Sequence record: MT612989.1
Reading direction: 5' to 3' (one strand)
DNA length: 64,000 bases
Notes under the pieces: model-generated
What the model saw: the letters and a program-made list of their open reading frames with translations, nothing else
The model's database searches: none
What the model was told of the DNA's origin: nothing
Translations under genes and position numbers: made by a program
Part shown: one piece after another, positions 1 to 51,140 of the stretch
Layout: the number at the start of each line of letters is the position of its first letter
How positions within the stretch are numbered: the first letter of the stretch is position 1

Positions 1-96
1 CGAAGCGAATTAGATTTTCATAAATGGTGTAAGGTTTTAGACTGCCGCGTACCACACAGGAGCCGATGAGACTTTCACCAATTTTTCACTAAAAAG

Positions 97-205
97 TTAT
101 CCACATTATCCACAGACTTATGCACAGCTAAATCATGTTTTTATACACAGATTTCAGACACTTATGCACAATCTCATACACATATTATCCACATATTTAT
201 ACACA
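97..205 (+). repeat. Array of co-oriented DnaA-box (TTWTNCACA) 9-mers
   Basis: TTATCCACA at 97, 106, 185; TTATGCACA at 118, 162; TTATACACA at 141, 197; one-mismatch TCATACACA at 174. Start-to-start spacings 9,12,23,21,12,11,12. Confidence 0.9.
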
Positions 206-584
206 TGTGCATTTAAACGAGGCATGGTGCGATATATTAAAAACAATACTATCTGTACCATGCTCTGAGACGCTGTGAGAGCGATTCTAAGCGTTTTTAG
301 TCATCGTTTGATATATCGCTCAAGCACCAACCGGCTATAGCTGCTAGAGCACATAGAACAAGCATAATGTAGCCGATAGGTATATCGTTTAGTAGATTGA
401 TTAGTGTTTGCATTACGATAGTTTAAAGCTCAATGATAGAATATCAATTAGGTAATACTGAATGATACAGTTAAACGCAGTTGTTATTAGCAGAGCCACG
501 AATGGAACTGTTCGTTTTGATTTATCGGTTACAAACAGATATGTAGTGAGAATCAGAATTAAGATTGATAGTGCGAACATGAGT

Positions 585-800
585 TTATCCTACTGTTAGA
601 TTAAATCGTGCAGCGACATAGCTTGCTCGTTGGTTGTTGTCATTAGTAATACGAATCATAGGTGGTTTGTTTGTATGTTCGTTTACGTTATACATGTGAA
701 CGACATATTCTTTGCCTAGAGTAATGCCGCTTGGTGGTTCTGGTTTATCGATACGAGTTGAAGTATTGTCTATGCATATTGCTTTGATAGTTTGATTCAT
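585..800 (-). CDS. Hypothetical protein (71 aa)
   Basis: ORF track; last gene of a minus-strand operon; ATGA overlap with upstream ORF. Confidence 0.7.
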   Translation of the reverse strand: MNQTIKAICIDNTSTRIDKPEPPSGITLGKEYVVHMYNVNEHTNKPPMIRITNDNNQRASYVAARFNLTVG

Positions 801-961
801 ATTGCGCCTGCCGTTACGTGTAGTAGAACATACGAGACAAAGCCTAGAACAGCAGTGATTACTAGTTTCACGAATCTAGGTTTGTTAATGAAGCTGAAGA
901 TACTCATGCCAGTGAGTATTGCACAGCATAGAAGTGTCATTAGTAGTATTGTCAAGCTCAT
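797..961 (-). CDS. Small membrane protein (54 aa, not in ORF track)
   Basis: Hand translation MSLTILLMTLLCCAILTGMSIFSFINKPRFVKLVITAVLGFVSYVLLHVTAGAI; two hydrophobic segments; 4-nt overlaps with both neighbours. Confidence 0.65.
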   Translation of the reverse strand: MSLTILLMTLLCCAILTGMSIFSFINKPRFVKLVITAVLGFVSYVLLHVTAGAI

Positions 962-1134
962 AGTGTTATTCCGTATTTGTGAATCACAATCATGTTAGCT
1001 AGATTGACTATACAGCAAATGGCATTGAATATCAAGACAAAGTTTCTGTATTCTTTAGACATGATTTGCTCGTGTGAGTCTATCATTAGCACGACGCTGA
1101 ATACTGCGATGATAATAGATAGTCCAATCATAGT
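958..1134 (-). CDS. Small 2-TM membrane protein
   Basis: Probable start MIGLSIIIAVF downstream of the promoter at 1162-1191; two hydrophobic helices. Confidence 0.65.
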   Translation of the reverse strand, partial: TMIGLSIIIAVFSVVLMIDSHEQIMSKEYRNFVLIFNAICCIVNLANMIVIHKYGITL

Positions 1135-1161
1135 GTTTTCCTTTCTTGATTTGATATGTGT

Positions 1162-1198
1162 ATGATACGCGAAAGGGCTGACATCTGTCAACCCTTTT
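1162..1198 (-). promoter_or_regulatory. Early sigma70-type promoter with -35 inside a terminator-like stem-loop
   Basis: Minus strand TTGACA-N18-TATCAT; hairpin GGGTTGAC-AGAT-GTCAGCCC-TTT. Confidence 0.8.
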
Positions 1199-1200
1199 CT

Positions 1201-1560
1201 TTAGTATAATTCATATGATCTGAGATTATTCATATCGAAGATATAGAAGTCTCTATTGCCACTTCCGTCATCGGCAGTAGTCAACATGTATTTGTTATCA
1301 GTTGATAGCCACACGCTTGTGCCGTAAACTTCTACTGCATAGCAATCGCCTTCTTCTAATGCATTAGCGTCTTCAAAGCCGTATTGGAACTCACGTATTT
1401 GATTAATGACGGTATGCATATCTTTCACGTCGTCAGTTACTAGATCGCATGTGAATAGCACATCGGTGCAGTCTACGAGTCCGTGCCATAGATGGTCGAG
1501 ACCAAACTTCGCTGCGATGGCTTCTTCAGTTTCTTTCATTGTTTTAAGTAGTTCTTTCAT
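1201..1560 (-). CDS. Hypothetical acidic protein
   Basis: ORF track, 119 aa, operon context. Confidence 0.75.
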   Translation of the reverse strand: MKELLKTMKETEEAIAAKFGLDHLWHGLVDCTDVLFTCDLVTDDVKDMHTVINQIREFQYGFEDANALEEGDCYAVEVYGTSVWLSTDNKYMLTTADDGSGNRDFYIFDMNNLRSYELY

Positions 1561-2342: not shown

Positions 2343-2965
2343 TTGCGTCTCCATTCATCACGAACAGTATTGGTTAGTTGTAGATAGAAAGTATCAAGAC
2401 CTTCGAATGTTTTAGCATACGTTGGTGAGTCATCGATCATGATATTGATTTGATTCTCACGGCAGTATTCAGCTTTCTTGTTGTTCCAGATTTCGTCATC
2501 GACCCATGGGCGACCTTTCTCGTCGTACAAGATTTCAACGCCGTCGTCTTCACATGATTGATGAATGCTAAACCAGTGATCATACTCGAAGTCATCTGGT
2601 ACATCAGTATCGAGTTCTTCTTTAATGCCAGTGATGATATGCACTTCAACTGGTAGTTTGCTTAACAGCGCGAAGAACTCTGGTGATTGATCAATTACGC
2701 CATGAATATCGATGCCGACTTTGATAACGCCAGTTTCGATAGCGTTCATGCCACGAGTATCAGACAACTCAACAATCTTATTTGTGATTCGCTCATCGAG
2801 GTCTTGAACTTCAACCATGATGGTAGTGATGTAGGCATCATTGCCGCCATCTAGTGCATAGTCTTGACAGCGCATGAGATACTTTCTAGCGTTGCGCAAT
2901 TGTTCAATCGTCGTGCATGATTCAACGACTTTTTGCATTTTTCTTACTAAATCGTATGGGTTCAT
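2339..2965 (-). CDS. HAD-superfamily (5'-nucleotidase-like) protein
   Basis: VGIDIHGVID motif I variant, HIITG motif II, IMIDDSP motif IV. Confidence 0.6.
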   Translation of the reverse strand: MNPYDLVRKMQKVVESCTTIEQLRNARKYLMRCQDYALDGGNDAYITTIMVEVQDLDERITNKIVELSDTRGMNAIETGVIKVGIDIHGVIDQSPEFFALLSKLPVEVHIITGIKEELDTDVPDDFEYDHWFSIHQSCEDDGVEILYDEKGRPWVDDEIWNNKKAEYCRENQINIMIDDSPTYAKTFEGLDTFYLQLTNTVRDEWRRK

Positions 2966-2966
2966 G

Positions 2967-3317
2967 TTAGCCTCTAAGTTTCTCGTTTAGCTTTTTGATT
3001 GTATGATCAACGTCATTGATTTGATGAGTAATGGTTGTCATTTGCTCGACCAATGCTTGTCGAAACATATTCAACGACTCGATGTTTGTTTGGTATTGTT
3101 TCTGCCAATGTTCGATGAGTTCAGGGATTTCTTCTTCAGATACATCAATTTCATTGTACAGATGTTTGAAATTTAAAATCAATGCGTGGCACAATGGTGC
3201 ACGGCTCGGATCTCTAGCCATGACGAACTGTTCTGAATCGAATGGGCTTTGCACAAACACATCGTGTTTTTCAATTGCTAGATCTTCTATTGATGTGTTG
3301 ATTCGGTATGCTTTCAT
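2967..3317 (-). CDS. Hypothetical protein with C-terminal coiled coil
   Basis: ORF track, 116 aa. Confidence 0.7.
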   Translation of the reverse strand: MKAYRINTSIEDLAIEKHDVFVQSPFDSEQFVMARDPSRAPLCHALILNFKHLYNEIDVSEEEIPELIEHWQKQYQTNIESLNMFRQALVEQMTTITHQINDVDHTIKKLNEKLRG

Positions 3318-5240: not shown

Positions 5241-5702
5241 TTACCACTTGCATAATTCACCGAGTGCGTCATATGCATCATTCATGCCGTGTAGACTAAA
5301 ATGATACGAGTATGACACACCGTGCCCGTTGTTTACAACATATTCGAGCATATTTCCTGTTTTGAGCGTATCGATAACATCATCACTATTACCAAGATAA
5401 GTCGTGACAGATGATTGTTGTTGTAACTGATTACTCTCGACTCGCACGTATGGGTTCCCATCTAGTGAATACCAGATTTCGTCCGGTTTTGCAGCGGTCA
5501 GGTATGCTCTCGTTTCATACAACGTGATTGCTTTATCACAGTCAATTGTGAGCACAGCAAGACGATTGACTGAGTTCGTGCTTGCAGTGTGTATTGGCTC
5601 ATGTGTGCGAACATCAACACGATGAACAGTCATCCAATCATCGTGTACGTGTGCGTTCGCAATCAATGGCATTATTGCCAAGCTTAACAATGCGAACTTC
5701 AT
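5241..5702 (-). CDS. Secreted/periplasmic hypothetical protein
   Basis: Signal peptide MKFALLSLAIMPLIANA. Confidence 0.7.
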   Translation of the reverse strand: MKFALLSLAIMPLIANAHVHDDWMTVHRVDVRTHEPIHTASTNSVNRLAVLTIDCDKAITLYETRAYLTAAKPDEIWYSLDGNPYVRVESNQLQQQSSVTTYLGNSDDVIDTLKTGNMLEYVVNNGHGVSYSYHFSLHGMNDAYDALGELCKW

Positions 5703-51081: not shown

Positions 51082-51140
51082 ATTGTATTCCTCAAAATTA
51101 AGAGGCTTGCACCTCTTAATTTTATTAGCAAGTTGAATAC

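Follow-up and report, generated by a model that had tools for sequence, protein, structure and literature searches.

The DNA analysed here, referred to as the window (64,000 nucleotides), corresponded to the first 64 kb of the genome of Vibrio phage vB_ValM_R11Z (MT612989.1, 100% identity; hereafter R11Z), a KVP40-like T4 relative and Schizotequatrovirus member with a genome of 246.8 kb, and carried close to its left end an array of eight co-oriented DnaA boxes. Position 1 of the R11Z record is arbitrary, as the end of the record joins window position 1 (compare the uninterrupted VH7D sequence). All genes were encoded on the − strand for tens of kb on either side of the array, which was surrounded by a long series of small early genes of unknown function, its neighbours having matches only to PHROGs without a known function. 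Within this block, it separates the 3' end of a − strand gene group from the promoter of the following group. Non-coding DNA extended over about 395 bp, made up of window 1-296 and the final 98 bp of the R11Z record.

Relatives were compared in an alignment of KVP40 and 11 array-bearing phages belonging to three clades: clade 1 (R11Z, VH7D, ValKK3, XZ1, phi-Grn1 and Va3), clade 2 (VS1, VS2 and QD01, the VS clade) and clade 3 (nt-1 and CZ01, assigned to the separate genus Mylasvirus). The array and its boxes in R11Z, with their variants in the aligned phages, were as follows:

97..205 (+): whole array, eight co-oriented DnaA boxes over 109 bp, seven exact matches to TTATNCACA and one with one mismatch
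97..105 (+): box 1, TTATCCACA; TTATCCACG in the VS1/VS2/QD01 and nt-1/CZ01 clades
106..114 (+): box 2, TTATCCACA, abutting box 1; TAATCCACA in the other two clades
118..126 (+): box 3, TTATGCACA, 3 bp past box 2; TTATCCACA in the other clades, differing at the N position only
141..149 (+): box 4, TTATACACA; TTATCCACA in the other clades, differing at the N position only
162..170 (+): box 5, TTATGCACA; the same in all 11 array-bearing phages
174..182 (+): box 6, TCATACACA, with one mismatch; weaker and more variable than any other box
185..193 (+): box 7, TTATCCACA; the same in all 11 array-bearing phages
197..205 (+): box 8, TTATACACA; TTATGCACA in ValKK3, XZ1 and the VS clade, TTACCCACA in nt-1 and CZ01

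The exact matches to the consensus TTWTNCACA (TTATNCACA) started at positions 97, 106, 118, 141, 162, 185 and 197, all on the + strand, and consisted of three copies of TTATCCACA, two of TTATGCACA and two of TTATACACA. For box 6, the VS clade had TTACACACA, while nt-1 and CZ01 carried TCACCCACA or TCACACACA. All eight sites had 0-1 mismatch to the consensus, and the spacers contained no recognisable weak box. Start-to-start spacings were 9, 12, 23, 21, 12, 11 and 12 bp, with gaps of 3, 3, 2 and 3 bp in the box pairs 2-3, 5-6, 6-7 and 7-8, respectively, while box 4 was separated from its neighbours by spacers of 14 bp and 12 bp, corresponding to two helical turns each way.

The original prediction, made from the letters of the window, had described seven exact boxes (three of the R1 type) in one orientation within about 120 bp, mostly spaced by one or two helical turns. 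The genome scan confirmed this description, with six of the seven intervals equal to one or two turns, and showed the cluster to be the sole one in 246.8 kb, other 200-bp stretches holding at most four sites with up to one mismatch. Two near-matches had been added to the exact boxes, of which the one at 174 proved to be box 6, whereas the one at 82 (TTTTTCACT, one mismatch to the consensus) was not conserved in relatives.

Outside the array, the remaining 63.9 kb of the window held nine scattered hits on both strands, compared to 10.96±3.37 in whole-window shuffles, and the R11Z genome contained 25 exact TTATNCACA sites, of which seven lay within the array and 18 were scattered outside it on both strands, compared with a compositional expectation of 13.3. 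Given a + strand frequency of 7.3 per 246,831 positions, about 0.003 boxes are expected per 109 bp, and the occurrence of seven boxes by independent chance was estimated at about 1e-21 (arithmetic from genome frequencies). Repeats can come from duplication, and non-randomness alone is uninformative on function.

The array region was also free of GATC, the first site lying at position 1217, in agreement with the absence of GATC from 1-584 noted in the prediction. GATC was scarce over the whole window (162 sites vs 275±16 in shuffles), and its absence near the array is therefore only weakly informative.

Conservation among relatives and loss in KVP40

The array was matched by BLAST in 17 Vibrio phage records, and two metagenome scans and one IMG/VR scan for further relatives returned only VH7D itself. 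The eight boxes were found in the same register in all 11 array-bearing phages, with a single 1-nt change in the VS1/VS2/QD01 clade. Variation among these phages was distributed as follows:

specified box positions (8 per box, 8 boxes): 5 of 64 columns variable, 0.08 minimum changes per column
fifth (N) box position: 4 of 8 columns variable, 0.63 minimum changes per column
spacers: 22 of 37 columns variable, 0.73 minimum changes per column

The difference between core and spacer columns was significant (Fisher test, p = 2.9e-8; 11 phages), and the register was retained while the spacers were just 49-76% identical between phages. Between nt-1, where the locus was syntenic with one additional ORF inserted, and R11Z, identity reached 84% for the array but 50-53% for its flanks, which makes the array the best-kept part of the intergenic region between genera. 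Variation inside the boxes mirrors the degeneracy of the DnaA-box consensus position by position, which points to purifying selection on the boxes. The claim that these 9-mers are real DnaA boxes was strengthened accordingly in the 11 phages, where changes concentrated at the fifth position and in the spacers and the register was maintained.

In KVP40, both flanks were retained (70-85% identity), whereas the intervening 125 bp were only 46-48% identical and all boxes were degraded. The whole KVP40 genome contained ten scattered boxes, with no cluster and no relocated replacement. As KVP40 possesses neither the boxes nor a cluster elsewhere, the array is dispensable. PVA8, like KVP40, matched R11Z only from window position 211 onward, and any boxes there therefore do not closely resemble those of R11Z. 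Loss of the boxes beside retained flanks, which the original prediction had regarded as speaking against it, was therefore encountered in KVP40, whereas the reverse was observed between genera. Judged by this distribution, the array is ancestral; selection has retained it in most lineages, whereas one can do without it.

A coding function of the array was rejected, as + strand ORFs across it were short and non-conserved and one clade carried a 1-nt indel. QD01 has an annotated 101-aa + strand CDS across its array (QD01_174; 2914-3219 of the extracted locus), which is probably a spurious call, its frame not being conserved in the other phages.

Candidate binding protein

The array is very probably bound by the host DnaA, and would constitute a selected binding platform for this initiator, on which DnaA may oligomerise. 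A tblastn search with DnaA domain IV (E ≤ 1e-3) matched 52 phage records, with no Vibrio record among the matches listed or the ten organism groups named, and a phage-encoded DnaA was rejected on the same ground. As no DnaA-like domain was detected in these phages among the matches listed, the host DnaA is the likely binder. The presence of the same 9-mer arrays in unrelated phages of other hosts (see next Section) points to a universal host protein.

In E. coli, chromatin immunoprecipitation sequencing (ChIP-seq) located in vivo DnaA binding almost only at box pairs 2 or 3 bp apart, and one added base pair between paired boxes abolished DnaA binding (PMC11317965). This in vivo requirement explains the conserved register of the array. 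It also implies that phasing cannot discriminate among functions.

Recognition of the 9-mers by a phage protein instead of DnaA, or their persistence as a functionless repeat remnant, is very unlikely. The neighbouring genes are all small and of unknown function, which leaves candidates for a phage binder, and KVP40 manages without the array. Both are nevertheless difficult to reconcile with a variation that fits the DnaA consensus position by position, with boxes and register kept where spacers are 49-76% identical, and with the recurrence of the same consensus in unrelated phages of E. coli and marine hosts.

Capture of the array from a Vibrio chromosome was also considered and rejected, as the 30-mer spanning boxes 1 to 3 was found in 12 bacterial genomes, all Firmicutes and none Vibrio. 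No dnaA gene was present in the 8 kb fetched around the 30-mer in any of these 12 Firmicute genomes. The same 30-mer (TTATCCACA TTATCCACA GAC TTATNCACA) also occurred in four unrelated IMG/VR viral contigs (L141-L143 and L145).

Similar arrays in other phages

The array was unique within the R11Z genome but not among phages, as phased arrays have been published for T5-like phages and were also found in the terminal repeats of T7-like phages and in over 120 IMG/VR contigs, which restricts the uniqueness suggested by the original prediction. Among T5-like phages, 25 have been described with eight DnaA boxes in the injection-stop region (Davison 2020, bioRxiv 10.1101/866236). The T7-like phage P483 (KP090453.1) possessed eight co-oriented boxes, five of them exact TTATCCACA, with 11-12 bp phasing (1490-1615 of the extracted locus), located about 390 bp upstream of early promoters. 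Shigella phage A7 (MK685668.1; nt 19-136) and Enterobacter phage phiEap-1 (nt 62-209) carried arrays in two copies each, and these two genome-end copies are read as a direct terminal repeat. Most T7-like relatives matched only the flanks of the array stretch.

The IMG/VR contigs were retrieved with a scan for three close co-oriented boxes, and many contained 6-10 exact boxes. They included a family of marine viral contigs with 6-10 phased boxes in an intergenic position, beside a GP88-family gene (PF17338) on one side and, on the other side, a small basic ORF and a T4-type large terminase (PF03237, PF17289):

marine IMG/VR loci L017, L038, L039, L040, L052, L081 and L115: phased arrays, for example at 6009-6162 in L040 and 6817-6903 in L039

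It is conceivable, though doubtful, that phased consensus arrays represent a convergent device by which virulent phages with their own replisome (T4-like vibriophages, T5-like phages, marine podophages and some T7-like phages) trap the host initiator on phage DNA. The vibriophage array would in that case be a DNA-only host-takeover switch, which on amplification would turn off initiation at the host chromosome or reprogram genes under DnaA control.

The literature search found no DnaA-box array described for T4-like phages and no paper connecting DnaA boxes with KVP40, the KVP40 genome paper being outside its coverage; the prediction, too, had known of no description of its two proposed functions in this group. 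A broader search found only the T5 preprint to describe such boxes (bioRxiv 10.1101/866236), and no paper connecting DnaA boxes with T7-like terminal repeats was found. The genome paper of phi-Grn1 and phi-ST2 does not mention DnaA and places a putative GC-skew origin at nt 51,089, the array lying at 208,182-208,352; a review of T4-related genomes does not mention DnaA either.

Comparison with known DnaA-box systems

Three elements to the left of the array were taken into account in the comparison:

left of window position 1 (−): sigma-70-type promoter, TTGACA-18-GAGAAT with TG before GAGAAT, matching the consensus at 10 of 12 positions
63..70 (unstranded): invariant CCGATGAG motif of the left flank, identical in all 12 aligned phages
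82..95 (unstranded): T5-N4-A5 AT-rich palindromic element adjoining box 1, including the near-match TTTTTCACT at 82

The promoter, located about 110 bp from box 1 and firing away from the array, was present in all clades including KVP40. The CCGATGAG motif is independent of the array, since KVP40 keeps it. The AT-rich element occurred as T5-N4-6-A5 in all array-bearing clades, whereas KVP40 had no A-tract.

The array shares with the DnaA-oligomerisation regions of gammaproteobacterial oriC, which are anchored at R1 and R4, the co-oriented TTATNCACA 9-mers, the 2-3 bp gaps and the 11-12 bp period. A run of about 5-8 such sites can template a head-to-tail DnaA oligomer, as in oriC, and in both cases a neighbouring promoter fires away (gidA at oriC). 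In contrast to oriC, which combines three strong sites with weak ATP-dependent ones, the array is of consensus strength throughout; it forms a single array rather than two opposed ones, lacks GATC/SeqA sites, a conserved IHF site and any evident 13-mer unwinding element, and is carried by a virulent phage with a T4-type replisome. The array resembles most an origin's DnaA-oligomerisation region, yet the other oriC features examined, namely GATC sites, weak sites and a clear unwinding element, were not recognised.

Like datA and the B. subtilis clusters, the array is a self-contained non-origin cluster of strong boxes that could lower the amount of active DnaA. However, datA consists of boxes in mixed orientation over about 1 kb together with IHF, whereas the array is co-oriented and spans 109 bp, and it is carried by an amplifying phage genome rather than by a chromosome. 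DARS1 and DARS2 also contain clustered DnaA boxes, some of them 3 bp apart, but in the DARS core opposed boxes drive ADP release, while all boxes of the array are on the + strand.

The injection-stop (iss) region of T5 offers a likeness in a virulent phage with its own replisome, with eight conserved boxes in non-coding DNA, including pairs 3 bp apart. In T5, the pairs are enclosed by inverted repeats that belong to the terminal repeat, and half of the boxes depart from the consensus, whereas the vibriophage boxes form a single co-oriented consensus array in the early-gene block of a presumably permuted genome; no inverted repeat carries the array boxes, and the record is circularly contiguous at the array. 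T4 oriE likewise combines a T4-family early-mode promoter with evenly spaced direct repeats, but these repeats have no similarity to DnaA boxes and their position is not syntenic. At T4-type origins, a promoter transcript enters an unwinding element or, at oriE, iterons are present; a conserved early promoter adjoins the array as well, pointing away from it. Homology to the oriE iterons was rejected, as those are 24-nt coding repeats of gene 5, read as the beta-helix repeats of gp5. In T4, these "iterons" consist of six 24-nt units inside the coding region of gene 5 (5403-5570 of the extracted locus).

Plasmid and P1 origins (oriR, pSC101, RK2 oriV) also recruit the host DnaA through tandem consensus boxes, but add iterons for a Rep protein and an AT-rich region, none of which was identified at the array. 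Overall, the array is assignable only to a generic kind, the DnaA-box cluster.

Possible functions of the array

The two ideas put forward in the original prediction, a DnaA sponge and a DnaA-assisted origin, remain the two leading candidates. The leading reading, adopted tentatively, is that the array is used as an origin-type element for phage replication. On entry of the phage DNA into the cell, about eight DnaA protomers would form a head-to-tail oligomer over roughly 110 bp, and this host-loaded complex would lie about 110 bp upstream of the conserved early promoter of the sigma-70 type, which is directed away from it. This complex could help to open the adjoining DNA for a first, origin-dependent round of phage replication, which would precede the takeover by recombination-dependent replication. 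The divergent promoter beside the array may supply negative supercoiling, and the array would be individually dispensable, like each of the several T4 origins.

The conserved early promoter next to the array, pointing away from it, supports the origin reading and has a parallel in the gidA promoter beside oriC; DnaA-box clusters are also origin components on plasmids and phage P1. T4 origins depend on promoters of the host RNA polymerase, oriE on an early promoter, and origins of the T4 family are host-made structures at early or middle promoters that are individually dispensable (PMC3016281).

A series of observations weighs against an origin. No DNA-unwinding outlier was found in the flanks, where the least stable 30-mers ranked at the 96th-99th genome percentile and none at the 99.9th; the candidate unwinding elements, T5-N4-A5 (82-95), which lies within the locally least stable 30-mer by the array, and ATATATTAAAAA (233-244), are thus not outliers. 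Inspection by eye revealed no 13-mer-like or DnaA-trio-like repeats, GATC sites were lacking at the array, and neither GC skew nor transcription direction changed at its site, the cumulative GC skew tracking gene direction without a turn, which is uninformative for T4-type phages. Only high-affinity consensus boxes were present, the low-affinity ATP-DnaA sites of the oriC switch being absent. The conserved flank motifs persist in KVP40 despite its decayed boxes, so the flanks are independent of the array, unlike in an integrated origin, and KVP40 has no replacement cluster. The T4-type replisome loads its helicase via gp59, a process in which DnaA is not known to take part, and we know of no hand-over from DnaA to the gp59/gp41 system. 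A review of T4 replication contains no mention of DnaA (PMC3016281), and the comparable boxes of T5-like phages are located away from the mapped origins (bioRxiv 10.1101/866236).

Several of these features would instead suit a DnaA sink or inactivator, a possible though less than probable function, in which amplifying phage DNA titrates DnaA, or converts it as datA does, with the result that the host chromosome starts no further replication rounds and host genes under DnaA control change their expression; such a role is compatible with the origin reading. All eight boxes are consensus-grade and suited to capturing both the ATP and the ADP form, no unwinding element was found, and the array behaves as a self-contained module that decays in KVP40 while both flanks remain, a loss that fits the usual variability of accessory host-takeover functions. 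At least 100 genome copies would provide at least 800 boxes (arithmetic), which is comparable with or above the E. coli chromosome, where roughly 300 DnaA boxes are present. On the other hand, one infecting genome brings eight sites only, a negligible number that would delay any effect until late in infection, a single cluster is present per 247 kb, and we know of no mobile element that uses such a sink. Chromosomal DnaA titration has experimental support, excess plasmid-borne datA or oriC delaying initiation (PMC12371093 and references therein), and B. subtilis DnaA-box clusters are reported to restrain initiation (PMC3245932). However, datA needs IHF and a particular arrangement of boxes, whereas the IHF-like site of the array (WATCAANNNNTTR, one mismatch, 129-141) was restricted to the R11Z clade and was not seen by eye in VS2 or nt-1, and DARS needs oppositely oriented boxes, whereas those of the array are all co-oriented.

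The position of the array, exactly between the 3' end of a − strand block and the next promoter, and the single orientation of all its boxes relative to transcription would also be expected of a transcriptional element, either a roadblock or insulator between co-directional early units or a far-upstream promoter regulator coupling early phage expression to the DnaA status of the host. [quoted passage not shown] The P483 array, too, lies upstream of early promoters, and its sense strand also reads TGTGGATAA. Transcription control nevertheless remains unlikely: known DnaA-regulated promoters carry a single box or a pair in or close to the promoter, whereas here there are eight, at a distance of about 105-215 bp upstream from the -35 hexamer, and both the promoter and the hairpins downstream of the array (see next Section) are unchanged in KVP40, which has no array. 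An architectural role, in which the DnaA-coated array would anchor phage DNA at the membrane or at a site of replication or packaging, or would stall a DNA-translocating motor as proposed for T5, is improbable. It would account for the eight conserved boxes in the injection-stop region of T5-like phages, the arrays within the terminal repeat in T7-like P483, A7 and phiEap-1, the terminase module adjoining the array in marine contigs, and the vibriophage assemblies of two laboratories that break at most 30 bp apart to the left of the array. However, T4 genomes are circularly permuted and have no fixed ends (PMC3016281), which is presumed for these vibriophages as well, the T5 model is itself only a proposal, and the assembly break also occurs in PVA8, whose match to R11Z begins at window position 211, and is therefore probably independent of the array.

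The classic example of phages that replicate without relying on the host initiator is the T4 type. That selection has apparently maintained a DnaA-binding array in two genera of T4-like vibriophages suggests that the host DnaA matters to them in some way, and that they probably exploit or disarm it despite possessing their own replication machinery. If used as an origin, the array would be the first DnaA-assisted origin in the family and a defined origin for KVP40-like phages; if used as a sink, it would be a takeover device without a protein and a natural test of the DnaA-titration model. The recurrence of arrays in T5-like, T7-like and metagenomic phages makes the question more general and indicates a widespread, largely unnoticed feature, for which the natural loss in KVP40 offers a ready-made comparison.

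Other elements and genes around the array

Four further features were identified to the right of the array:

221..264 (+): long hairpin with arms CATGGTGCGATA / TATCTGTACCATG, G.U pairs only in the + strand; also in KVP40
267..297 (+): second hairpin ending in a T-run, terminator-like, immediately downstream of where the − strand ORF 297-413 stops
297..413 (−): 38-aa ORF, annotated only in XZ1; region missing in KVP40
413..580 (−): 55-aa gene without annotation in R11Z; phrog_32164 match (E = 2.7e-31)

The original prediction had described 1-584 as free of ORFs. This was consistent with the R11Z annotation, where the first CDS starts at 585, but not with the coding character of 413-580 and 297-413, both on the − strand. 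Homologues of the former are annotated in KVP40, ValKK3 and XZ1; this gene borders the non-coding region and is the final one clearly recognisable in the early transcription unit upstream. The products of both were small and membrane-like.

The region 206-300 had a predicted folding energy of -29.2 kcal/mol on the + strand (z = -3.96) and -21.8 kcal/mol on the − strand (z = -2.5). The arms of the 221-264 hairpin were conserved, with one-sided changes only and no compensatory change, and a consensus terminator scan did not call the 267-297 hairpin. The two + strand hairpins lie within a 160-kb block of − strand genes, without a conserved upstream promoter, and resemble either the 3' terminus of a + strand transcript or a fold adopted by single-stranded DNA. 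They are not tied to the array, because they are kept in KVP40; a structured + strand RNA as a partner of the array was rejected on this ground and for the lack of compensatory changes and of a conserved promoter. The invariant hairpin motif GCGATATAT(T/C) (229-241) has an inverted copy 65 nt away at 307-319, inside the 38-aa ORF, the two 13-nt arms being 92% complementary. A search of Rfam gave nothing of note in window 1-1500.

Two readings of the array region as promoters were discarded. As a row of promoters, it gave a single weak match (TGCACA-16-GATAAT, 9 of 12 consensus positions) that was not above shuffles, and a late-promoter match to TATAAATA at 194-201 on the − strand was missing in VH7D, ValKK3 and the other clades.

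The assemblies that break just left of the array, at most 30 bp apart, came from two laboratories and shared the break within window 1-31 (MT612988, ON190025, ON190024, OQ164647 and OM782678). The R10Z and R11Z records start at window position 1, and those of PVA23, PVA8 and PC-Liy1 end at about window position 30. According to its paper, PVA23 was assembled with SOAPdenovo and its termini were not determined. The shared break could be a coincidence, a coverage anomaly or a physical end.

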